This document shows positions 13,241-34,290 of a stretch of 64,000 nt of DNA, one piece after another. The first letter of the stretch is position 1. Every line of letters starts with the position of its first letter. The stretch is from NCBI RefSeq assembly GCF_964204645.1, contig NC_134035.1:9208451-9272450 (forward strand), in the 5' to 3' direction. A model generated the notes under the pieces. That model searched no databases. It had not been told where the DNA came from and saw nothing but the letters and a program-made list of their open reading frames with translations. A program made the translations under genes and the position numbers. The DNA comes from Tubulanus polymorphus (lineage: Eukaryota > Animalia > Nemertea).

Positions 13241-16200
13241 GTTTATCTTTTTCTCCACGTCAGAGTGTTTATATTCTGCCGATGGGATCTTTTGTTTAAC
13301 TAGGGAGGTTGTTTATTCTGAACATATATACGCAAAATTGATGAGGCTTTGAATATCGTGGAATCCTAAATGTCGGTCGTTGCGTGTTCGTATTCTGCAT
13401 TTTGTAACAACAAGGCCTGCCGCGTGAAGCGCAGTGCGGCTTCGTCGAGAGCCTGCGCACGATTCATCTCTTATAGTATGAGAACATCAATTATGAATAG
13501 TTATCGGGGTTTTCTCGTCCATTCCAGTCAGTGGCGTCCTTGACAAAAGGTATCGTTTATGTCAGCTGAATGAAAATGCAAACTATCTTCGCGTGAATTC
13601 AACGATACTTACACCATTTTCGTACAGTAGAAATAATAGGATTGATATGTAATGAATGAACATCATGAAAACGTTACAGTGAAATACCAAAAGAGCGAGA
13701 AATACCCCAAGAGAAATACCACAAGAGAGCGACGTCCCTGGAGTACAGCGGTGTAGCGAAATTGAAAAGATATTTTGGGCGCTGAAACAAAGAAGTTTCC
13801 GCCGTGTTTACTGTTGATAACAGCTTTTTTGAATAGAAACGATTGATGAAAACCCAGCTGCGAGGTGATTTCAGCCGTGAAAAATTATCAATAAATGTAG
13901 AATATTAAATAGTGAGGATTATGAAGTGCGATTGAATCGGGCAGAATTCTATGTTAGAGACCTGTCGCGTCGTGTATAAGAAGCTAAGAAGAACAAATCG
14001 GATTCGGAATTATTACAGAATTCATCGCAGAATATTAGCCACACACGTATTCGCTCTCTCGTTATTTCGCGGATTAATAATCGTTAATTAGAATTAGATG
14101 AAAATGACGTGAAAATGTCGAAATACGTGTATGCGTATGTATATAATATGTATGTGTTACTTATTGTGTGGGTTCGTTCTGAGTTGAGCCGTTTTAGAAT
14201 AAACTGAACGCGTAAGCAAAAATTACGAGTTCAAATGTGTGATATGACATTTTTAGAGCGCGCAATCAAACACAAACAGTTCGATTATTATTAGATTGAA
14301 AACGAAATTATAGATCGTGATATTTCGATTGTAATCCTATTGAAGGTTTTAACTCTGTTATATGGAGATGTTGTGCCTTCGGGCGATGGAATGAATGAAT
14401 CAGGCGACTGATACTGATTCTATACTGATTCTAGAATATCAACCTCTTCGGCTAACTTAAAATCGATGAAGTTTCCCCCGAAAAAGTTATCAACGCGTAA
14501 AACGTTTAACCTTTTTTATATAGAAAGTGGAAGTCGATATATTATTCATCATAGGCGTTTCTCAGTTGAATAAAAGTCATTATAATCCTCAAACAACGAA
14601 GATCAATTAATGTGTGCTGAATAATTTATGGTTAAAGGCCATTTTCTTGTTTTTATTCGTTTCAATGCTTTGAAATTCACTCTAATCGATGAAACAACGC
14701 GTACTATTCTAACCGTCAAATCGGTTGCTTTCGAGTCTGATGAAGGTGAGCGATTCATTAATTTAGATGCAGTTCTGTGTAATGAAATTTGTATTATAAA
14801 CCCCTTCTATCTTGTAATAGTTTATAATAAACCCCTTCTATCCTAGTAGTAGTACTATACTATATATGATGCATTTTCTATGAACTATTTCATTTGGACT
14901 TTCATGGTCTGAAGCAAATAAACAAATAAATAAGTTAATGAAAAATTATATCACCATTTCGTCCTTTTTTCTATCTTCCGGGCCCCGAATCTTTCAGACT
15001 TCGACTTTCGAGATATGAAAACGAACTAGAAACACCAGACATTAGGTATTTACCAAATGTATTTCATCATTCAAAAACTGACAACTTAACTCCTAGGATT
15101 TTGAAAGTTGCGACTGTACGATGACGGGCTTTACTTATCGACTTGTAAATTCATTAACTCCTTAAAAATGAAGATGTTTTTTTTGTGAACGCGTGGGTTA
15201 AAGAAATGAACGAGAGGTCAATACGTCTGCGCTGCCGTCTCCAGACTAATCGGTACACGGGCATTTTTGAGTTATCAATTCGCTTCGATGATCGCGGAGA
15301 AAATTTCGTCTCCGATTCAATATCCGATGGCGAGTTCGAGTTTAAATCGCTCCTATCAGCTTTTTATTCACCGTAATAAAATATGAATTGGAAAACGCGA
15401 GTGAGATAAGCGTAATAACTAGCGGGACTGCAGCAACGTGGGGAAATTATGACATTATGTTCTTATCGACGTTTGAAACTGTTTTCAGCCGTGGTTCCGT
15501 TGATTCATCCCGTTCTACTGCGTAGTAGAAGAAATTAAATTTAAGTGAATTAAAATGTGAAACGCCGAGTGCAACGTTTCCACACCTGACGATAGTCTCC
15601 AGTGACAGAACGAAACGTCGTTCACGTTTTACTTCGTATTTTGAAACTTCTATGCTTGGTTTTGTGTATGTGCGCGCAGCTAGAATATCTAATATCAAGA
15701 TTTCGTGACGCCGTAAAAACCGTTGCAATAATGTTTATATACATTGATACCTAGTATGCGTTGTATAAGGAGTCGAGGTGCACTGTCTGAGTCGAGGTGC
15801 ACTACGTCATCAAAATTGGCGTTTCAAAATAATAATTACAATTGCGAATTTTGGCATTTATTTTGAAATTTAATACATTTCATAACTCTCATTTCGTTTT
15901 AATAAATTTTGATGATTATTTTTGAGAGGATGTGCACTACGTCATCGATATATCGGGGCTAGATTGGTTGCCGGTCAATTCAATTCAATGGGGTACCCGC
16001 AAAACTAGCTATCCCGTTAGATGGCGTGACCAGCAGTAGGTTGCTCGATTTCAAAATAAGTTGCATTGACGACAATATCAAGCAATATGTGTTATTTTTT
16101 AAGGCCTCAATTAAACCATCAAGTTAGTTTTCTCATTACGAAAACAACTGCAGCGACACCGCTTGGAACTAACGAATCTAGGCGCACGCATAATAATTGA

Positions 16201-19475: not shown

Positions 19476-19616
19476 TTCAGCCTTGTAATGTAGCTATTTC
19501 CAAAATCTCGATGTATGAAATTAGGCAGCCAAGAAAATTCACCCCAACCAGTCGAGTTTCGATGGAATTAGAGAGCAAAAAACATTGAACCCAATCAGTC
19601 ACTTGCCGGTTCAGAC
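19476..19616 (+). repeat. 5' part of dispersed repeat family 'R1', split by the MULE (3' part at 34069-34290)
   Basis: Matches reverse complement of 28792-28870 (TTCAGCCTTGTAAT.. and CCCAATCAG..CTTGCCGGTTCAGAC). Confidence 0.8.
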
Positions 19617-20420
19617 GCAAAATGTACCATGTTGATAGAGAATTGCTCAGTGTTTGGTACAGTACATAGCTAATATACAAAACAATATAACGGCATTTTA
19701 AGGGTCCAGAGGGCAAGGTCCAGCGGGTCAAGAGGGTAAGGGTTAGGGTCTAGAGGGTTTAGGGTAAGGTGAAGGGTTAGAGTAAGTTGTCAACTCTAGT
19801 CATCACTTATAAATACCTAATCAACATTTTTGAGATAGTTCAGAAAGTCCAGTCCAGTTCAGTTCAGATCAGATCAGAACAGGGCCGACCTGCGAGTCGT
19901 GAGCTCCGGATACTATAACGAAAAGGCCGACCTGCGAGTCGCGAGCTTTGACATACATCAATAAATAATATTCACGACAGGTCATCGAAAATATACTAGT
20001 TAGTATTTTCCTCGTCTGGATTCGGATTTTAAGAGACGTTCGACAAAGGATCGCTTCCGATAGTAGAGCACGCCTCTTAAATAGTCTCTCTAAAACATAC
20101 GCACGGTATCAACTGGTCGACCAGCACGAAAGGACACCTTTCTGCTGATCGTGGAATTGGACGAAAACACAGTTTAGGTATATTCGTTTCGGATTCCCTA
20201 CAACCGTTTTTTGTTTGTGGAACGACGGCTAGGTACTATAGACTATCATGGACGTAAAGTAGTTTATACGTCCATATGAGTTTATCAAATGTTCCACTGC
20301 CAGGTTGAATACGCGCCTCTGTACCCAGCTCAACGATATCGAATTCCTGAGTCCCACGTCTTTGCGGTCCCAGATCCGACGCGAGTGGATTGAGTGCATG
20401 ATCGAATAATAAAACCCCGG

Positions 20421-20700
20421 CAATAGACAGATTTAAATTCATAAAAAATCTTATTCAATTGAGTGGAGACATATTAGGCTTTTTAGATTACTTGCAGCAG
20501 CGTGGATCCTCTGGAAATTTTGCCAACAACTTCATTACGCTTACCACTCATAATTTGAAAAAACCCAAATTTCTTTCTTTAATTATGATACTGGATTAAA
20601 CGGTACATCATCATGTAAATCCAGGAGTCCATATTAAGAATTTCGTTCTTTGTTTTCAGTCTTAAAATGATAGTATCTGTTTTTCTCCAAAGTATTTTAA
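20421..20700 (+). repeat. ~280-bp direct repeat, second copy at 33543-33820
   Basis: CAATAGACAGATTT..AATTGAGTGGAGACATATTAGGCTTTTTAGATTACTTGCAGC..GTCTTAAAATGATAGTATCTG in both copies. Confidence 0.9.
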
Positions 20701-23700
20701 AGCCTGTTTGGTCAACGGATGGCTATAGTGACAATCAAAAAGATTGCTGATTTCACAATACTCTTCGGCAGCTAAATACTTGCTTCTAACCGGTCAACTA
20801 GTGTCAGTGCGTCCGGTTTAAGCTGTATTGCCATTGATATAATCGCATCATCATGTTTTCCGCACATCCTCGTCTCCGGACAATGCTGGTGGAAATATTG
20901 GGTTGAAAAAAGAGGTGGATTGCAATAAAACCACTGACTGGTCAACTAACAAAGTTCAGAATAGCTAATTAACTAAACAAATAAAATAAAGAATTTCAAA
21001 CAAACATATTTATTATCATACAACAATTATACAAAATGCCAGGTATGTGCTCGAGGAATTATAACGTACGTTCCTCAAACACGTGGACTGTATTTCAAAA
21101 ACAGTCCAACCATGGACGCATAAACTATAAACTAGAGTTTATACAACCATGGTCCAACCATAGACTCTAAAACGGAAATGTCTATGGGCCACAACCATGG
21201 GCTCTAAACTGTAAGAGTCCATGGCTCCCCGCACTAAAACCAGAGGTAAACCTGGCCAATTACCCTGGAAAGCATAAGATTTAATGTTGAATCAATCTGA
21301 TTTACATTTTTACTCTTAAAAGTTGACCCGGCCAGCCGCCTATCTACCTTATAGGTGTTACTTTAAAATCATGATCAAGCTAACCATAACAGATTCGGCA
21401 GTTATAGAGATTAACTGATTACAAATATCATTGTTATTTACAAAATGACAGCTGGCCGATCAGGAAAAACAAGGTATAATTTTTAGCCTTATGATGAGCT
21501 ATCCAAAAAATAAGATTACCGCACTAGCCTTTAACATCACAATTGCTACTGCAAGGTTTTTCAAGGTTTTTATTCACCAAAAACATTTCGACAACAACTG
21601 ATTCAGAAAATTTGAATCAATAGGATAATAATAAAATAACAACGAATTGTAAACTTTGATCCATAAAACACAATTGGGACCAGTCTGAATGTCTAAGACT
21701 ATTAATTTGACAATTCATGAAGTCACCAGGCATAAGTGACATTTGGCTATTTCATGAAATATGAAGCATTTTACCATATCAACTCTTCAATATGACAATG
21801 TAAGATATATTTAGAATACTCTGTTTATGTATCATCAATCATCAAAGAACTACATAACATATCTCCAACATATAAACATTAAAACTCCATAAATCCACAA
21901 ATTCGCTCTCTCAAATAATCAATCTCTAATTTCATTTCATTAAACATTATTCTTAAAAGAAAACCGAAATTTCGCAAACTTTGCTTTGTATTTTAGGAAT
22001 TGTAAGTTACTCGTTAACACATGAGTGAACTGTATTCGAAAAACAGTTCAACATAAAAGCATTAAAACTAATAATACCTACAGATTCAAACTGGAAAGCT
22101 TGAGATTAACTAATCAATCTTAATTTTTTCATGTCCATAAACATTATTTTACAAGATAACTAGAGTTTTAAGTAAGATAGCTAGAGTTTTGCCAACCTTG
22201 CCTGAGGTTTTCAAACATTATCAATGTTATTTTCTCAACATTGTTATGTTTAATGCAAAGTATTTTGAAGGTGTTTTCAATTAAGATATATTGAGTATCA
22301 TCGTATAGATATTTCATCTATCCATGTAAATTACAAATAACAGATCACTGAGATATCTACAATTAAGCTGATTTCGATAACTTTTTCGCGATCGGAAATG
22401 CATCACGCGCAGATTTGAATCGGGCCCCATATATTGTAAAACTGACAATATAGCTATCAAAACATAGCTAGGACAATTTACTAATCAACACTGTTCATAT
22501 TTCCTCATTTATAGAAAAGAATGCTCCTCTTCATTCGATAGGACCTCAGTTTGATGGTTGCTATAAACCTAACTAAACAGTCGAAAAATTTTAAGATGAA
22601 TAATGAACACGTATGTGTCGTTTTATTCTCATGACAAAACCTTGCTAAATGACAGGTATTTACGTACTCGTGGAATTATCATGTAAGTTCCTTGTTAACA
22701 AATGGACTGTATTTTAATAGTTCGACAGTTCGACATAAAAGCATTTAAACAAGAGACAAAACCTACAAAGTCCTGCTTCCGCTGTCCCTCGTCTTAACTT
22801 ATGATTTTCAAACATTATCAGTTCGCTCATCTAATACATTTAATACAAAGTTATTTGAAAACATGACAATAATTTTACTATCGATAACTAATCACGTTTA
22901 AAGCTGTTTAACATTCTTTCTAAAAAAGAGTAAAATGTAAAATCTCCCAGATATTATCCCTAAAACAATCAACAGTAACAGCAGTGACAGGGTGTGCTAT
23001 AGGTAAAAGGGCAGGTGATCTTTCATCAGTTATTTGAAGCATTCTATCAAATCAGTTATTTTTTTAGTATGTTTGGTTTAATTAAGGTTTATGGTTATTT
23101 GTTTTGTTTATTACTAACTGTCCGATAGAATGCTTAAAACAACAATAGAAATGATCATAAGAGGTTGGGAAACTCTAGAGAAGGTTGTTCCATGTGAAGA
23201 AGAACCTTTAATGATTAGGTTAAGTTAATTAAAAAAATTCCTGATGATGATTATAATTATAGAAGTTAACTAATTGTTTGTTCGTTTTTGTTTATTTTTA
23301 TTATTACTTATGATTTTATTTGTTTTTTTTTTAAATATTTATTTTGTTATGTATTTTTTATTCATTGTTTTTTTATTTATTTACTTCTTTAATTATGTTC
23401 TATGTATTTTGTATTTTGTACTATTTTTTACTATTGACATCATCAGGAATGTCTTACCGGTGGAAATATGGGCTCACTTTAAAAAAGTGCTACAAATTCA
23501 CTGCTGCTCCTAAATAATCGTTTATCATTAAAAACCCCGATTTGGAGTTAAGCGATCATTGAAAGCAACTCAACCTTATGATATGGATGATGATGAGAGA
23601 AGTTAAAACAGCTATAAACAGAATTAAAACGATCAAAATTATTGCTGGCCATTATCATTTATTCCTTTATATCACATTATTCCTAGCTATACCTCTCTTA

Positions 23701-24286
23701 TACCTCTGTGGATACAATGTACTAAGATACAAGTTTTCATATACCTAGCTATGATCATCTACATGGAAGCTCAATGCTAAAACCCTGTGAAAATCGAGAT
23801 ATTCTACTCATTAGTCAAATCGCTTTTATGGGCATTGGAAAAAAAATATGGCATCAACAAATACAACACTTTGGTATATAAACTTAGTATTTGTACACAG
23901 AACACTGCCGAACATTATAGTCTATGTTTTTCTTAACTACGTGATGATATTCAAGGGCGTAGCCAGTCTATACTGAAGGCCCACTTTTTGGCCAAGGAAT
24001 CATTTTCAAAACATCTTTATTCAAAGCCCATAAACTTGCTGGGCGAGTTTAACTAATCAGGTATCAACTTCCTTTATTGCGTTTAAAAGTTTCAACCGTT
24101 TAACTGACTACCCTCTCCCTTTTGAACATTCAGGCTATGCAAATCATTTTCACTCTCAGGAAATATAAAATGAATCACTGTTTCTAAGAGACCAAATTAT
24201 GTCATTATTACAAATCATGCAAAGCTATGTTTAACTAAGTATGAAGATTATCTGAACTATCCTGTTGATATCATATCTCAGTTTAG

Positions 24287-24480
24287 GTGTATTTCAACGG
24301 ACCTCCGTCGAACCGTAACGCTGAATGCGATCAATACCATGAATTAATGGAGCGTAGATTTCATGAGACTCCAAGAAGGAACTTTCTGTCACATTACAAA
24401 GGACATGACACATCTGTTTACAAATCGAAAACAGTTTGCCTAATCAATATGAAAGAATTAGGATGCCATTTTATTGAAAT
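24287..24480 (+). pseudogene. Possible decayed DNA-transposase C-terminal fragment
   Basis: YFNGPP...ELMERRF...RNF...YKSKTV recalls the NGP..(H/N)F..SKVV tail of hAT-like transposases; from memory, not searched. Confidence 0.3.
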
Positions 24481-24899
24481 ATTCAAATATGAATAGTTCC
24501 TTCTCAGGCCCAGAGCCCTAATTATCGAACCTCAATTTTCATTAATCAACATTAAAACTATTTCTTTATTTCCGCCTCTTCAAAAAGACAGTGCATTTTA
24601 AGACGCATTTTGAAACCCATGTTACACATCAGACTGGTTTGTAAAAAGGTAATACACAAAATAAATCAATACTTTACATATTCTACTGACGTTGCTGCTC
24701 CTGAACAAGTGTTTATAAGATACGCATTGTCTGTGCTGCTCCTGAATAAATGTTCACAATATATATACATTGTCTCTGCTGCTCCTGATTAATTGTTTTT
24801 ATATAACACACGCATTGTCTCTGCTCCACCTGTAGAAGAAATCTGTCATTGGGCGATAAACCGCTGCTGGCTGAATTTCTCATCTGGACTTCTAGGCCT

Positions 24900-27800
24900 A
24901 CGCAGTTGAATTCAAGTTGGACTCTTCTGTGGTAGTTGATGATTTCAATTCAAGTTAGAATCTTCTGTTGGCAGTTTTAATCAGTAGATTCTAGATAACG
25001 AGTTGATCTCAGGCTGAGCTTCTTCTTATAGATGTGATTTAGCTGAAATTAATAAAAGAAGATATCCTGTAACTATACAATATCTTACAATATACACAAT
25101 TTTTCATATAGCATTAATCATAATAAATTCCATGTAAATCAACTTACCTTTCAAGATAACTGGATTTAGTGTCGGCTAGGAGTTCTAAGTTAGTTGATTA
25201 GTAAAATTCAAGGTGCATTCTTCTGTTGTCTGTTCTAATCAGTAGATTCGAGATGGTTAGTTGATCTTAGTATGGACTTTTTCTTATAGATGTGATGTAG
25301 CTGAAATGCACAAAAGGAGATATCCTGTAATCACACAATATTTCATACAGCATTAATGAAAATGGATTCCATGTGAATCAACTTACCTTTCAAGTCGGTT
25401 CATGAGTTAAATTCGTTCTGTGGTAGTTGATGATTTCAATTCAAGTTGGAATATTCTGTTGGCTATTCGAATCAGTAGATTTTTGACTAGTTAAATCTTA
25501 GGCATTTTCTTATAGATGTGATTTAGCTGAAATGAATAAAAGAAGATATCCTGTAATTAGACAATATCTTACAATACACACAATTCTTCATATAGCTTTA
25601 ATCATACTAAATTCCATGTAAATCAATTTACCTTTTAAGATAACTGGGTTTCGTGTCGGCTAGGAGTTCTAAGTTAGTAAAATTCAAGGTGCATTCTTCT
25701 GTTGTCTGTTCTAATCAGTAGATTCTAGATGGTTAGTTGATCTTAGTATGGGCTTTTCCTTATAGATGTGATTTAGCTGAAATGCACAAAAGGAGATATC
25801 CTGTATTCACACAATATTTCATATAGCATTAATGATAATAGATTCCATGTGAATCAACATACCTTTCAAGATTGCTGCGTTAAGTATCGGCTAGGATCGT
25901 CTAAGTCGGTTCATGAGTTAAATTCGTTCTGTGGTAGTTGGTGATTTCAATTCAAGTTGGAATATTCTGTTGGCTATTCGAATCAGTACATGTTTGACTA
26001 GTTAAACTTTGGCTGAGCATTATCTTATAGATGTAATTTAGCTGAAATGAATAAAAGAAGATATCCTGTAATTATACAATATCTTACAATATACACTATT
26101 TTTCATATAGCATTAATCATAATAAATTCCATGTAAATCAATTTACCTTTCAAGATAACTGGGTTTAGTGTTGACTAGGAGTTCTAGGTTGGTTCTAAGT
26201 TCAAGTTGCATTCTTCTGTCGACTGTTTTAATCAGTAGATTCTAGATGGTTAGTTGATCTTAGTATGGGCTTTTTCTTATAGATGTGATTTGTGATAACT
26301 GGGTTTAGTGTCGGCTAGGATTGTCTAAGTCTGTTCTCTAATCGGCAGATTTTAAACGAGTTGTTGACCTCAAGCGCGGCAGTTTCATATAGATATTATT
26401 TAGCTGAAACGAGTAAACAAAGATATCCTGTAAATACAAATATTTCATTCAGAATTAATCGTAATAATTTCATGTATATCAACTTACCTTTAACGATTGC
26501 TAGGTTCGGTATTGGCTTGGATACTCGGTGTGTTAGGACATTAGTTTCGAACCCCAACTGCCTAATTATTTGTTGTAGTAGTAGCATTCGTTCATCACTG
26601 TTCAAGATTAATGACGGACCGGATATATATCAGATCAGCAATGTGGACCGGTGCATAGATTTTGGTAATTAAATGCCTCTTCTTTGCGCTGTTCTCTAAT
26701 CGGCAGATTTCAAACGAGTTGTTGATCTCAAGCGCGGCTGGTTCATATAGATAGGATAAAGCTTAAACAGTTAACAAAGATATCCTGAAAATACAAATAT
26801 TTCATTCAGAATTAATCGTAACTAGTGGAAAGCCCGTGGAAACCACGGGTGATTTCTAAATGAAGAACTTCCCACTTATTATTTCGTTGCATGTTGATTG
26901 AGTATTTGGGCATTTCAAAGTGGCCTCATTTATGTGGTGTGATCAGCTGTGCCCATATAGAGACCATACGGGATCTCAGGACTCACTTGAGCTTCTTCCC
27001 ATGGAGGCCCAAGGTTACAGAACTATAGATAGAAACAAATATGTAAAGTACCGATATGATCATTTCATAATGTATGAATTTCATGACCCGGCAGCTGGGT
27101 CACAAAGGCAACAGTAGCTCGTACTGTATCAACAGTGACAACAGTGGCTGTCTCTAGTCAGTGGCTATGCCAGCAGACCCATGCACCCTCTGTGAACAGT
27201 AGGAGAGACTACAAAAATTTGGAAAGTGAATAATTTTGAATGGAAACCATGCCCAAGCGATAAAAGACGTCGAGATCTACCGCCGGGCAAATTTTCAGGG
27301 CAATACATCCAGTAACGATGGAGCAGTCGGTGCAACAATTCAGTATCATTATATAAGATAATTTCATGTATATCAACTTACCTTTTATTATTGCTTTGTT
27401 CGCTATCGGCGAGGATCTCCTAAGTTGGTTGGTTGATGTTGAGATCAATTCAAATGGCCCCTTCAGTGTGCTGTTCTCTAATCGGCAGATTTTAAACGAG
27501 TTGTTGATCTCATGAGCGGCAGTTTCATATAGATAGGATTTAGCTGAAAATGAGTAAACAAAGATATCCTGTAAATACAGATATTTCATTCAGAATTCAG
27601 GCCCCTTCTGTGCGCTGTTCTCTAATCGGTAGATTTTAGATGAGTTGTTGACCTCAAGCGCTCGTTTGACTTTGTAGCCGGGTCACATCGTACTGTATCA
27701 ACTGTGACAACAGTGGCTATCTCTAGTCAGTGGCTATGCCAGCAGACCCATGCGCCCTCTGTTTACAGTAGGAGAGACTACAAAAATTTTGCAAATGGCG

Positions 27801-28470
27801 CTGTTCCAGTTGGTCGATTTTGGAAAAGTAGTTGATCTCAAGCTGGGTTTTTTCTTATAGTTGCAATTTAGCTGCTATGATTAAAAGAAGATAGCCTGTA
27901 ATGACAAATTATTTCATTTAGAATTCATCATTATCATTTCCATAAAATATAAACTTACATTTCAAGTTTGCTGGGTTCCGTATCAGTTAAAATGTTCTAA
28001 GTTCATTGATGCATTTGATTTAAGCTTGAATTGTTGTGTGGGCTGTTCTTATCGGTAGATTTATGATTTGTTGTTGATCTCAAGCTGGGCAGTTTGATGA
28101 AGATAGGATTCAGCTGAAGAGTAAACAAAGATATCATGTAATCACAAAACATTTCATTGAGAATGAATCGAAATAACTCCATCTATATTAAGTTACCTTT
28201 TATGATTGCTGGATTCGTTATCGGCGTGGATCATCTAAGTTGGTTGGTTGATTCTAGTTTGCTATGCGCTGTTCCAGTTGGTCGATTTTGGACAAGTAGT
28301 TAATCTCAAACTGGGTTTTTCTCATAGTTGAAATTTAGCTGCAATGATTAAAAGAAGATATCCTGTAATGACAAAGTATTTCATTTAGAATTTATCGCAA
28401 TAATTTCAACTATATTAAGTTACCTTTTATGATTGCCGGGTTCATTATCGGCGAGGGTCTCCTAAGTTGG
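24900..28470 (-). repeat. Tandem array of ~230-260-bp exon+intron units (candidate spliced non-coding transcript)
   Basis: Minus-strand introns 25147-25043, 25386-25301, 25631-25527, 25862-25777, 26146-26042, 26487-26404, 27958-27872, 28196-28114, 28423-28339, each AAA(G/T)|GTA....YAG|CT. Confidence 0.8.
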
Positions 28471-28655
28471 TAGTCTAATTTTACATATCTTTTGTTGTTT
28501 TTTCTGTGTAAATAGTCCGAAAGTTTACAATGTTTGAATTTTGTCTAATTTTACATTTCTTTGCTTTTCTTTTCATGTAAATAGTCCGAAAGTTTACAAG
28601 GTTAAGATAATTTTGTCTAAGTTTTACTTTTTACTTTTGCTTTCTCCGTGTAAAG
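28470..28655. repeat. ~70-bp AT-rich tandem repeat, ~3 copies
   Basis: GTCTAATTTTACAT..GTAAATAGTCCGAAAGTTTACAA. Confidence 0.8.
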
Positions 28656-28659
28656 TTTT

Positions 28660-28870
28660 TTCAAAATCGGAAATCGAAGTACAGATATAGTTGCGTGATC
28701 GGTGGTCCATTTTACATAAATTTTCTTTTCTTGAAATCCAAGCACATAACGGGAAATTCGGTTCCGGTGCCTTCAATTAATCTTCCAACCAGTCTGAACC
28801 GGCAAGCCTCTGATTGGGGACTGCCTATTTTGATACATCGATATTGGAATATCTATATTACAAGGCTGAA
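28660..28870 (-). repeat. Uninterrupted R1 copy inside the MULE
   Basis: Single GGTTCAGAC (minus strand) joining the two halves that flank the MULE. Confidence 0.8.
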
Positions 28871-30899
28871 GATCATTTTGTACATTTTATGACTAGTTGA
28901 TTAATAGTATCATATAGTGCAAACCTGCTAGTAAAATTGCCCCTATATAAATTTCGATTCCCAGCTAAACTATGTTTGTATTATTAAATTAACTTCATCG
29001 CCAATTAATAGACTTTTAAGAGATATGTATTCTTCCCACAGACATCTGTGCCCAGTGAATGGTATTCTAATCCATTTCAGTAATTTTAAATATTGCTGGT
29101 AAAATATATACAATGATCTTATGATTATGATAATATAACTAGCTTAACGAACCCAGAATTCCCCAAAACCTAACTGATTCAACAGATCCCACACACATGT
29201 GGCCCAGTTAGACGCAGACAACATTGCACGATACAGTCGTCTCATCCACTGCGCTATTTTTGATAAACTTAAATTCGTTATATTGAATTAATTCTAACTT
29301 ATTTTCTGATATCTAAGCGATCCATTAATTAGTAATCATACTAGCCACAATTAATTGTCAGTCGAACAATATTTATATGGAGCCTGAAAACCTACATGAG
29401 TAGAATTTCAGATGTGGTGAATTCATCACTATTTGAATTCATCAGAACTTAAGTTAAAATCACATTTTTAGTGGTAAATTAGAAATTCCCTTATACCCGA
29501 ATTGCAATATAATCTTTATTTCCCTTTTACAGTACACTGTGTATAAGGATCAAAAGACCTTGTTATGACCGGACCTCCCTGGTGCGGTGCAAGACATGAT
29601 GCTGGAATATAGTTTGAAGGAGAGGGGTTAGTAAAAGAGAGCTATTAGCGAGAGGAATAAGACCTAAGTTCAGGATATCCTGTCAGAATAAGGCTCTCAA
29701 TCTGACATACACAGTGATATTGAAATATTCCCCCTTCCAAATCCAGGAATGTATATTTGTGCACAGATTTGTTTTATCTCCCTTCGATCGGAAGTAAATC
29801 TGCGTTAAATGATTTTGGCAATATGTATCAAAACTAATACAGCTGTATGAAGACGCAATAGGTTCACTTAGATACAGATAAATAAGTAATGTGCTCAGAT
29901 ACACATGTATCAGCTACATTTTTAATGTCAATGTACTTGAATTCAAAATAATTTCACATCATTGAATTTACCTTAATTGTAGATATCTAAGTAGTACCTT
30001 AATGAATAATTCACCTTAGTTATATCCTTATTCATCCTCCAAGTTGTTTGTCCCGCGTGTTGACTAGGTAATGATGTTTTTGGAACGTCTAATGGTGCCA
30101 TCGGACTCAGTCCCAGAGTCGGATTATGGATGTTGGTATCACCAGACTTCCCACCATCGGAGTTTGACTTCTGGCTAGCGAAATGACAAGATGAAGAGAG
30201 CATATTATATATTAAGTCAAAATGTTTGTCAGACAGAGCCTGACCACTGTGGTTTGAGAAAGCTTTAATTATCTCATAACCATCCCTATCATTAATAGTA
30301 TTAACTATTATCGTGCCACAGATTTATGCCAGCTCCGTTCGTGTCTGGGTTAGGTACATATACAGCCAAACCATATACCTCTTCCCCACACGATAAGTGT
30401 TTTTTGAGAACACCTGTATTTTGGAATTAGTAAAAATCAACCCCTGATATACCACTATTGCCCCAAGTTTGCTTAAAATGAGCTGAAATTAAATAGTACA
30501 TAATCATTAATCCACAAGACAAAAATTGCAACTATATCCAACTTTGATAGTGGATGATGAAAAAGATGAAAGGCCAGGATGAGGGGTCTGAATCAGAAAT
30601 CGAAGATACAGAGTTTAGGATGTAATTGAAGTACACAAAAGATGCTCGAGATTACAGAGTTCACGAAAACAATATAGACGATATCATCCGCTGCGACAAG
30701 AAAAATTGGGAAAGATTTTGATGGAAGGGGAAAGAACCTTGGATGAAAAATAAAATTTACACAGTTTCACGGCTTAAATCGAAGTACAACCATATAGACG
30801 CTGGTAATACATAGTTTTAACAGCTTTACATCATATTTGATCTAACCTGAGAGAAAGAAGTCAGCACAGAACCTCTGGCTGATAACAGCAAAGTCCGGT

Positions 30900-31520
30900 T
30901 CTCAGGGTTCCAACTGGCAGCGGCAGAGTCAGAGTTCTGTAATGTGGCCTCGTCCCAGCTAGTGGCGGGGTGCCAATGACACTGTGTTACTACGGAGGAC
31001 CCGCAATCAGAGTAAGACGGGAAGCGACAAACAACTTCGGCTTTGGGGGATATCCGATCTTCAAGCATCAACACCAAAAGACAACCGGCACCCAGATGAG
31101 AGAGAAAAACTGGGTGAACGGGGAGCCCAATCAGCAAGATGCCAATGGGTAGCCTTAGGCGAAGAAACCAGCTGATTCAGACTAGAATGGACCAAACTGG
31201 GGACCCAATTGAGAATTGAGCACACCACCTAAGACAACCGACACCCAGATGACAGAGAAAAACTGGGTGAACGGGGAGCCCATCAGCAAGATGCCAATGG
31301 GTAGCCTTAGGCAATGAACCAGCAGATTCAGACTAGAATGGACCAAACTGGGGACCTAAAGATCCAACAACCCCCTCAGTCGAAGATTGCTACCGCTCCA
31401 ATCTTATTCTGATCGTAGGTCCCCCGTAGTAACATCCGCATCACCAGCACTCCGCCACTAGCTGGTAAGAGGCCACATTAGTGAACTCAGACTCTGCCGC
31501 TGCCAGTTGAAACCCTGAGA
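30900..31520. repeat. Foldback: ~150-bp inverted arms enclosing two ~128-bp direct repeats
   Basis: 30900-31050 vs reverse complement of 31370-31520 (~80% identical by eye); direct repeats 31078-31206 and 31231-31356. Confidence 0.85.
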
Positions 31521-31674
31521 TTGAGAGGGCGGGGGCGAGGGACGAATGAAATGAAAGAAAAAAAAATGAAAAAACAAAAATAATATAGAAAAATAATGAA
31601 AAAAATAAAGATATAAAATATACCACACATTCATACGACACATATAAACACCATTCACTCCTCTTGCACACACC

Positions 31675-31762
31675 ACGCACACAACTCCATCCACCGCACA
31701 CATAACTCCATCCACCGCACACATAACTCCATCCACCGCACACATAACTCCATCCACCGCCA
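31675..31762. repeat. 21-bp tandem repeat, ~4 copies
   Basis: CACATAACTCCATCCACCGCA. Confidence 0.9.
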
Positions 31763-34068
31763 CCGGCGCCACGCCACCACTCCGAAAAACACCGCGCCAC
31801 AAGATCGCCAGGAAAAACAGCAAAAGCTGAAGAGCTCGAGAGAACGCCATCTGATCGTGTCAAAGACTAGTACTCGATTGAACGATTGTGGAGAAATTCC
31901 GCAGTATTACAGTATCAAATGCAAACATAAATGTAGATATTTTATTGAACGGAATTGATTTTTCAGTTCACGTCAGTTGAAAACCCGTTTTGATCGATGT
32001 TTTAATGTTTATTTTAAATACAAATTAGATTTAAGACCTAGGATTATTGACTAATATCTAATTGTGAGGGTAGAATAAAAGGATCGCGGATAAATTTCCT
32101 GCTCGCATGCCACAGCTCTGTCAAATCTCAATCGTCCAGTGCTGCCCCTAAATACTGTGGCGAATACATAAACTAATCGATTAATATACTCTACCCGTAT
32201 TTGTACATGAGGCCTACCGTTTACTTATCTTGCTTAGTTTACGTCGTTCGTGTCTTGTGGTATTCCAAGACTATAAATCATATTGGATCCATTTTCAGGG
32301 GTAGAGCTAGATAATTAAATGATAATTATCCGAACAGTAGATTGTTCTATTTTTTCTCCACGTCAAAGTTAATAGTTTAAAAATTCAAAATACAAATTAT
32401 GTTCAAATTCAGATTTCACAAACAACAACTCGTTGGCCCACTGAAAGATAGCAGCGAAACAATCTTCGGGTAATAAATGTTAGAAAGAATTAGGTTATCC
32501 TCTCAGGGCCTGGTTAATTGCGTTACCGTACGGTAATGAAAAAAGTAAGCAAAGAAGGTAGGCCTGGACCGTGTAGGCTTACATTATCCAACTACAAAAG
32601 CCTTGACGCAACATAAACAAAATCGAAAAGGAAAATATCAAAAGTGCAGGATATCAAATGCCTGAAGTAGCTTGGGCTTGAAGCTAATTACACCACGAGG
32701 GCAGATCTAGGCAAATATATCCGAATTTCAATTGCTAGACTTAATAGAGTGTGGTCGAATGAGAGAGTATAGCATCTCAGAGAATGTCTAGAAGTTCAAA
32801 TCACACTGCGTAGATTTGTTCACGTCAAGATTCATATAAAACTCAAACAGTGCCATAAAATGAGCACCTGAAGTCTACATCAAGGACGGGTGGCCATTTT
32901 ATCAGAATCATGGGAAGAAATCCGTTGAGGAAGCGTCGATGGATAAAAGCAAACACATCTGATTTTAAAAAAAACATGTTTTGAACATTAGTTTCCATAA
33001 TATTGAATGTATGCCTGTTTCAATATTTCTCTTTAAAAAACCAACACCGACCCTGAAAGATATATACTCCAATGAGGTTGGTTTGGAATTTGTGGTAAAC
33101 TATTGGAGATTTGGCTGTGGAAGGTATATATGAATCACATTATGTTTCATGCAGTAGCATGTCGTAATACATTGACGCGATTGTGTGCTTATAGATTTCA
33201 CATGGTCACAGTCGAATGATCGTCGGTGGTTCTCGGGGAATTTACTATATGCCAGTTCAATTGAGTCAATTCACGCTCGTAACACAAACTAAGTCCCGTA
33301 CTAACGTGCGGTCAGCCCTATGGGCCCTGGTTGTTAACTATTAAGATTTTTGATGACGCGGTCTTTCGTCTTAGACTGTTGTTTGGTCATTGTTCGGAAG
33401 GTTGACCAAATTTCATCTGGGTTTGCATGCAGACTTTTCGAATTTGTCTATACCCAGGCTTTCTTAGCGTTTTGAATGCTTAATTGGTGGTTTCCTCAGC
33501 AGACTTTAAGGCAAGGAGATTGTCGATGGAGTTTCTTAGTATCAATAGACAGATTTTAATTCATAAAAATTCTTATTCAATTGAGTGGAGACATATTAGG
33601 CTTTTTAGATTACTTGCAGCATGGACCCTCTGGAAATTCCGCCAACAACTTCATTGCGCTTACCACTCATAATTTGAAAAACCCAAATTTCTTTCTTTAA
33701 TTTTGATACTGGATTAAACGGTGTCATTATGTAAATCTAGGAACTAGTCCATATTAAGAATTTCGTTTCTTGCTTTCAGTCTTAAAATGATAGTATCTGT
33801 TTTTTCTTTAAAATATTTTAATGGTGTTCATGTAAATGTTTGTTTATGGATAAGATTGGTAAGGGAAAAAATTTATTTGAGCCTTTCTTTTCGAAGACAG
33901 AATAGGTACTCAAGCAAGCAAGGAAAGCTAGCAAACAATAAGCATTTGGCAACTGGCAACTAGCAACTGGCAATGTCGTCTCAGGGCTTCCATAATTTAC
34001 TCGGATTTTGACTAAGTAGTGCAGTGTACCAAAAATCTGAAATTCTCTGTCAACATGGTACAACTTGC

Positions 34069-34290
34069 GGTTCAGACTGAATGGAAGATTGTTTGAATGA
34101 ACCGGAACCGAATTTCCCAATAATGTACCTCGATTCAAACAAAAAATTCTGTGAACTCGACCGCCGATCACACAACTATATCTGTACTTCGACTTCCGAT
34201 TTCAAAATCAAGGCCCATTTCGCTCAATAAAAAAAATCAAACTAAATTTACCAGCCGAATAAATAACAGGGACAATCCCTATTTCAAGAT
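34069..34290 (+). repeat. 3' part of split R1 repeat
   Basis: Matches reverse complement of 28660-28800, and shares AACTATATCTGTACTTCG and/or AAATAAAT..GGGACAATCC blocks with 6800-7075 and 53570-53690. Confidence 0.8.

Follow-up and report, generated by a model that had tools for sequence, protein, structure and literature searches.

A 14.45-kb non-autonomous element with a 9-bp target site duplication and a large repeat passenger in the genome of Tubulanus polymorphus

Mutator-like elements (MULEs) produce target site duplications (TSDs) of 8–10 bp and usually possess terminal inverted repeats (TIRs) of more than 100 bp, often with short subterminal tandem repeats. The TSDs of hAT and P elements are 8 bp or less (7–8 bp for P). 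Transposon insertions nested within another element and re-mobilised by that outer element are also known. Nested MULEs are described in PMC3903597. The MULEs of animals have TSDs of 8–9 bp, subterminal repeats of 9–15 bp and non-autonomous derivatives with heterogeneous interiors, and 2 of 14 Aedes MULE families have TIRs shorter than 60 bp (PMC5225508). Plant Pack-MULEs and animal Pack-TIRs are by definition elements whose interior was captured from unique host or gene sequence and whose parental locus is free of transposable elements (PMC8277862, PMC5861414); the animal Pack-TIR survey covered interiors of 100–5000 bp only (PMC8277862). Merlin elements have TSDs of 8 or 9 bp and a conserved terminal GG in their TIRs (PMC8101967). 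The subject of this report is an element at positions 19617–34068 of a 64,000-nucleotide stretch of the genome of the nemertean Tubulanus polymorphus (the window; contig NC_134035.1, C11:9208451–9272450). Functionally, it is a cargo-carrying non-autonomous TIR element, of a kind that is known and of a size that is unusual. Genome-wide searches were conducted on the 268-Mb assembly.

The element is 14.45 kb in length and is bounded by imperfect 45-bp TIRs. The 9-mer GGTTCAGAC appears at 19608–19616 and is followed by the left terminus GCAAAATGTACCATGTTGA...; at the right end, read on the minus strand, the duplicate of GGTTCAGAC at 34069–34077 abuts the terminus GCAAGTTGTACCATGTTGA.... The two copies of the TSD are identical at 9 of 9 positions. 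The TIRs were aligned by BLAST from 19617–19661 to 34068–34025 (46 aligned columns, 85% identity), and 29 nt at 90% were reported by a repeat finder. A 13-nt core of the TIR is found at just two sites in the window, both of them termini, where 0.14 are expected. The TIRs of the original prediction are real, at 45 bp and imperfect, and the proposed length of ~50 bp was slightly generous.

When the left flank, one copy of the TSD and the right flank are rejoined, the resulting sequence gives a continuous alignment through the junction with a paralog of the host repeat at 28620–28910 (minus strand). This paralog, itself uninterrupted, lies in the passenger (the repeat DNA carried by the element) and contains a third GGTTCAGAC at 28792–28800 on the minus strand. 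The 27-nt rejoined site has 561 genomic matches at ≤3 mismatches, many of them exact, and the reversed control has 0. The similarity to a full copy on a different chromosome (C4) extends to the terminal base on either side and no further. Since the rejoined flanks align to a paralog and 561 uninterrupted targets are found against 0 in the control, both the insertion and the 9-bp duplication are real. It is thus confirmed that 19617–34068 is a non-autonomous TIR element that has transposed, with a genuine TSD of 9 bp and a very large passenger. Both the exact TSD and the restoration of the host repeat upon excision with one TSD copy had been read from the window alone, and both were upheld. The host repeat (19476–19616 and 34078–34207, and also 28659–28870) is very abundant, as judged by the 27-nt site count. 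In a long copy of the element on C10, a clean 30-bp deletion is present in the internal host-repeat paralog (window positions 28790–28821) and the 9-mer target is lost.

The sequence specific to the family is confined to the 171-bp left arm and the 73-bp right arm, and the 14.2 kb between them is other repeat DNA. The regions of the long form that are common to a 378-bp miniature inverted-repeat transposable element (MITE) of the same family and to solo ends are limited to 19617–~19786 and 33994–34066. The features of the locus are listed below.

19476–19616, unstranded: left half of the interrupted host repeat, which is high-copy and dispersed; the last 9 bases are TSD copy 1 (rejoined site found 561 times genome-wide)
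19617–19787, plus strand: left arm of 171 bp with the 45-bp TIR (19617–19661) and subterminal short tandem repeats (19703–19786, from TRF); common to the MITE and solo left ends, with similarity stopping at ~19786
19788–20190, plus strand: short repeat X of 403 bp, which is dispersed in its own right and separates the left arm from the large passenger
20186–20700, plus strand: 5' terminal unit of the passenger, the last 280 bp of which (20421–20700, A-left) recur directly at 33543–33821
20700–33542, plus strand: passenger body, 12.8 kb, non-coding, a patchwork of older repeats; colinear TIR-less copies at 91–97% identity and older ones at ~75–90%
24925–28471, plus strand: degenerate tandem array in the body with a base period of ~245 bp and a 491-bp higher-order unit (self-BLAST)
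28659–28870, minus strand: uninterrupted host-repeat copy in the passenger with a single GGTTCAGAC (28792–28800), a paralogous empty site
30900–31520, unstranded: inverted-repeat (hairpin) block with two 153-bp tandem units between its arms
33543–33995, plus strand: 3' terminal unit of the passenger, consisting of A-right (33543–33821) and 33822–33995, ending in ...CTTCCATA, where the TIR-less copies that were read all end
33996–34068, minus strand: right arm of 73 bp, family-specific, with the right TIR at 34025–34068; common to the MITE and to right ends elsewhere
34069–34207, unstranded: TSD copy 2 (34069–34077) and the right half of the interrupted host repeat (from the rejoined alignment and the 561 genomic sites)

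The subterminal tandem repeats detected by TRF have 6- and 14-nt units and are confined to the left arm. Repeat X has at least 15 genomic copies at 82–95% identity, with both boundaries shared. The length of the tandem array at 24925–28471 differs between copies, and the hairpin block belongs to a segment (30400–33300) with at least 25 genomic copies. No open reading frame (ORF) of more than 141 aa is found inside the element; its ten longest ORFs gave no Pfam match at E ≤ 0.1, and an Rfam search of the element gave no match. A giant non-autonomous element had been proposed, and its size and lack of detectable coding capacity agree with that proposal. Gene fragments are unsupported because no Pfam or Rfam match and no ORF of more than 141 aa was obtained. 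The description as a Pack-MULE with captured gene fragments and a promoter is accordingly not supported, the interior being a colinear copy of a non-coding composite repeat. The "spliced repeat array" and the hairpin that were included in that description are present; they are not separate items of cargo but ordinary parts of the passenger repeat that occur in every copy. For annotation, the array, the hairpin and the "gene fragments" should be read as parts of repeats and not as regulatory or genic features downstream of a neighbouring gene. That neighbour had been given as a catenin gene, and no obvious coding ORF was seen near position 15100, where its stop codon had been placed.

The family is small, with about 16 termini genome-wide. 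The second full copy, at C4:5005250–5021035 (15,786 bp), matches the window copy from terminus to terminus. Its termini are intact, no TSD was found in a search that included shifted positions, and its flanks share no k-mer of ≥6. The third long copy, at C10:12454578–12469272, ends 123 bp short of the right terminus. The 378-bp MITE is located at C3:7962395–7962772 and is flanked by TCACGTCAG and TCACATCAG, a 9-bp duplication matching at 8 of 9 positions; paired TIRs with a different 9-bp duplication, as had been sought elsewhere in the genome, are thus present in this copy. A TSD can be read in two insertions only, the window copy and the C3 MITE, and both are 9 bp. The termini of the various copies begin with GCAA..., GAAA... 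or GTAA.... Five right ends whose flanks differ all retain the terminal G, which is therefore assigned to the element.

The composite of 20186–33995 (~13.8 kb) also exists apart from the family ends. Colinear copies at 91–97% identity are found at a minimum of six other loci, which include C5:22.72–22.73 Mb, C9:13.66–13.68 Mb, C8:13.41–13.44 Mb (two tandem units), C1:1.82 Mb, C2:0.90 Mb and C7:1.33–1.35 Mb. No family terminus was found at these loci by genome-wide terminus scans. Dozens of older partial copies were also recovered by segment-by-segment searches. In the TIR-less copies for which the sequence was read, similarity ends at a single base, window position 33995 (...CTTCCATA), and is followed by unrelated flanks; this shared 3' end is the base at which the passenger joins the right arm. 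The 5' ends of the TIR-less copies vary from window position 20696 to 20842, and no TSD of the passenger was seen in the two copies with both flanks in hand. The 5' unit within the element is without ~60 bp that are present in other copies.

The passenger repeat is the least explained part of the element. No coding capacity was detected in it, its 3' end is fixed and its 5' ends vary, neither a TSD nor a poly-A tail is visible, and its copies are both dispersed and tandem. These features would suit an undescribed kind of large non-autonomous mobile element with its own route of spread that also hitch-hikes in a Mutator-like miniature element, a speculative reading to which we assign a low probability. 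An LTR-type element, suggested by the 280-bp direct repeats, is unproven in view of extra sequence at the tandem junctions, the variable 5' ends and the absence of a visible TSD. A Helitron-like element was rejected since the passenger does not end in CTRR and a consistent A/T target was not observed. At C8:13411094–13439401, at least two passenger units are arranged head to tail with a period of 13.7–14.5 kb, and partial tandems are likewise present at C5:22.72–22.73 Mb and C9:13.66–13.68 Mb. An older family (~84% identity, more than 300 first-look candidates, for example C4:5609545 and C11:12727215) matches the passenger body from window position 20718. The equivalent region upstream of 20718 is a different conserved sequence in that family, and the ~13-kb passenger is for this reason a chimeric derivative of a far more extensive family of repeats. 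Two sampled 3.5-kb loci of the older family contain no ORF of ≥100 aa.

The three long copies on C11, C4 and C10 differ by 2.6–2.75% pairwise substitutions and have identical arm-to-passenger junctions. In a tree built from 1.6 kb of the 3' region they group as a single clade (support 89/91) inside the more diverse TIR-less set; the C4 copy pairs weakly with the C11 copy and is not basal. Because the clade of long copies is nested in this manner, the passenger family is older and broader than the copies that bear TIRs. The shared junctions and the tree suggest that the passenger most likely entered the arms once and that the composite then multiplied. Among TIR-less sequences, the closest to the three long copies in the 3' region is an 8.4-kb segment at C1:30748068–30756489, which is colinear with window positions 20994–33997 (94% identity over 2.9 kb and 67–82% elsewhere) and lies 270 kb from a body-less derivative of the family at C1:30.48 Mb. 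This segment was considered as the donor locus and set aside; it is colinear, but at 67–94% identity it looks like another old copy.

The history that we propose is as follows. The element belongs to a low-copy, non-autonomous cut-and-paste family; the window copy, one of three long copies, was inserted into a high-copy short repeat. A transposase supplied in trans, most likely a Mutator-like DDE enzyme, would recognise the 171-bp and 73-bp arms. The passenger would have inserted itself into a short ancestral element, with small deletions to follow. The whole composite would then have transposed several times, as shown for the window copy by its TSD and the empty sites and as presumed for the C4 and C10 copies. 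Later decay would have produced the body-less derivative, the 3'-truncated copy and the copy with mismatched flanks. Taken as a whole, the reading of a passenger nested within the arms and moved intact in trans, most likely by a MULE enzyme, is given a probability of roughly 0.55. Insertion into a short ancestral element is favoured because both junctions match native boundaries of the inner repeats: the left junction is the native 5' boundary of repeat X and the right junction is the native 3' end of the passenger.

Several observations weigh against this history and bring other routes into consideration. Simple nesting requires extra deletions, because the long form has no counterpart of the ~140-bp MITE centre and its 5' passenger unit is ~60 bp shorter than in other copies. 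Transposition of the C4 and C10 copies is presumed and not shown, because the former has no TSD and the latter has no right end. The competing route to be taken most seriously, though an unlikely one, is capture of the Pack type, in which a single round of template switching, in the course of gap repair or replication, gave the arms their whole 14.2-kb interior. The donor would have been a region that already held repeat X beside a copy of the large repeat, and the same route has been proposed for Pack-MULEs and animal Pack-TIRs. Such a capture would account for the replacement of the central ~140 bp of the MITE, which is not simply split, and for the one or two bases shared at each junction; multicopy animal Pack-TIRs that arose through fork switching and then transposed are on record (PMC8277862). 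Random switching is not expected to place both junctions on native repeat boundaries, the junction of X with the passenger was found in no TIR-less locus among the 40 of 431 candidates scored, and the interior is repeat DNA and not unique host sequence. A macrotransposon is decidedly improbable. In this case two fractured short elements would have flanked a resident large repeat and their outer ends would have been used, with C4 as the founder locus. The C4 flanks, with no shared k-mer of ≥6, are as expected for ends from different insertions, and solo left ends are common in the family; however, recombination between two copies explains the mismatched C4 flanks equally well, no inner termini or remnants of the MITE centre are found inside the element, and C4 is not basal in the tree. 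There is very little reason to regard the element as a segmental duplication or assembly artefact that ends by chance in inverted repeats. Such a case might be suggested by the extreme repeat content of the region and by the absence of a TSD from the C4 and C10 copies. Against it, the duplication at the termini is exactly 9 bp long, hundreds of uninterrupted paralogs match the rejoined target, copies cease to be homologous at the last base of either terminus, and the 378-bp relative has the same ends with its own 9-bp TSD.

The identity of the transposase was weighed in the same manner, and assignment of the family to the MULE superfamily is somewhat favoured. A 9-bp TSD is seen in both readable insertions (9 of 9 positions in the window copy and 8 of 9 in the C3 MITE), within the 8–10 bp of MULEs, and the G...C termini and the subterminal short tandem repeats of the left arm are also consistent with this superfamily. 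MULE DDE domains are abundant in the genome, with at least 56 PF10551 matches. Against the assignment, the TIR of 45 bp at 85% identity is short for a MULE, the subterminal repeats are found on one arm only, and none of the 56 PF10551 matches lies near a family terminus. The autonomous partner with a MULE DDE domain for which a search had been suggested was not found: scans for these ends (26 nt at ≤3 mismatches and 19 nt at ≤2 mismatches) returned nothing beyond the family above control, and an exact scan of metagenome contigs for the termini gave no match. Because no transposase gene was found with these ends, the superfamily is assigned from two TSD lengths and the features of the ends; the Mutator-like character claimed earlier fits these features, and membership is unproven. 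Ends of another superfamily, such as Merlin, or P- or hAT-like elements whose duplication is atypical, moved by the corresponding transposase, are a rather improbable alternative. The 9-bp TSDs of the two insertions, the only two that can be read, fall within the Merlin range, and the TIR is short for a MULE. The terminal 5'-GG of Merlin (PMC8101967) is absent from all termini of the family, which start with GC, GA or GT. Both readable TSDs are 9 bp, the terminal G being the element's own, in contrast to the 8 bp or less of hAT and P elements.

The element is best described as a miniature element re-mobilised whole together with the large repeat, nested or captured, inside it. It resembles the non-autonomous Muta derivatives of Aedes aegypti, which are multicopy, have TSDs of 8–9 bp and subterminal tandem repeats, and share only their ends around heterogeneous interiors (PMC5225508). 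It differs in the 45-bp TIR, in the failure to find an autonomous partner, and in an interior of 14.2 kb, compared with a few hundred bp to ~3 kb for the Muta derivatives (PMC5225508). As in plant Pack-MULEs and animal Pack-TIRs, short TIR ends surround foreign DNA and the whole is amplified to multiple copies (PMC8277862, PMC5861414). Foreign DNA is enclosed here within the TIRs of one family and a TSD, whereas the interior is not unique host-derived sequence; the passenger has termini of its own and is a multicopy, non-coding repeat in which no gene fragment was detected. The junctions at native ends of the inner repeats and the intact outer TIRs and TSD are like those of nested, re-mobilised insertions, but the centre of the outer element is missing and nesting alone is insufficient. 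The likeness to Merlin extends to the 8- or 9-bp TSD and to a TIR within the 24–462 bp range (PMC8101967), but there is no terminal GG and no IS1595-type transposase is associated with the ends. As the locus shows, transposon ends of about 240 bp in total are enough to move 14 kb of DNA in an animal genome, and the locus is a clean example of a repeat family that gains a second route of spread by sitting inside another. The element is nearly three times the 5-kb limit of the published animal survey (PMC8277862), and surveys of that kind therefore miss this size class.

The other members of the family are short or incomplete. In the body-less derivative at C1:30.48 Mb, the right arm is truncated. 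Several solo left ends of about 160–175 bp and one solo right end were also found. The ~140-bp centre of the short members has tRNA-like motifs, for example GGTTCGAATCC, and may be SINE-derived filler; no tRNA was called in the MITE centre by ARAGORN. At C3:18.54 Mb, a 305-bp family member lies within a 267-nt inverted duplication at 99% identity. The duplication consists of ~193 nt of flank and the first 74 nt of the right end, so that a second right end faces the first. This structure resembles the product of a recent aberrant transposition or template switch.

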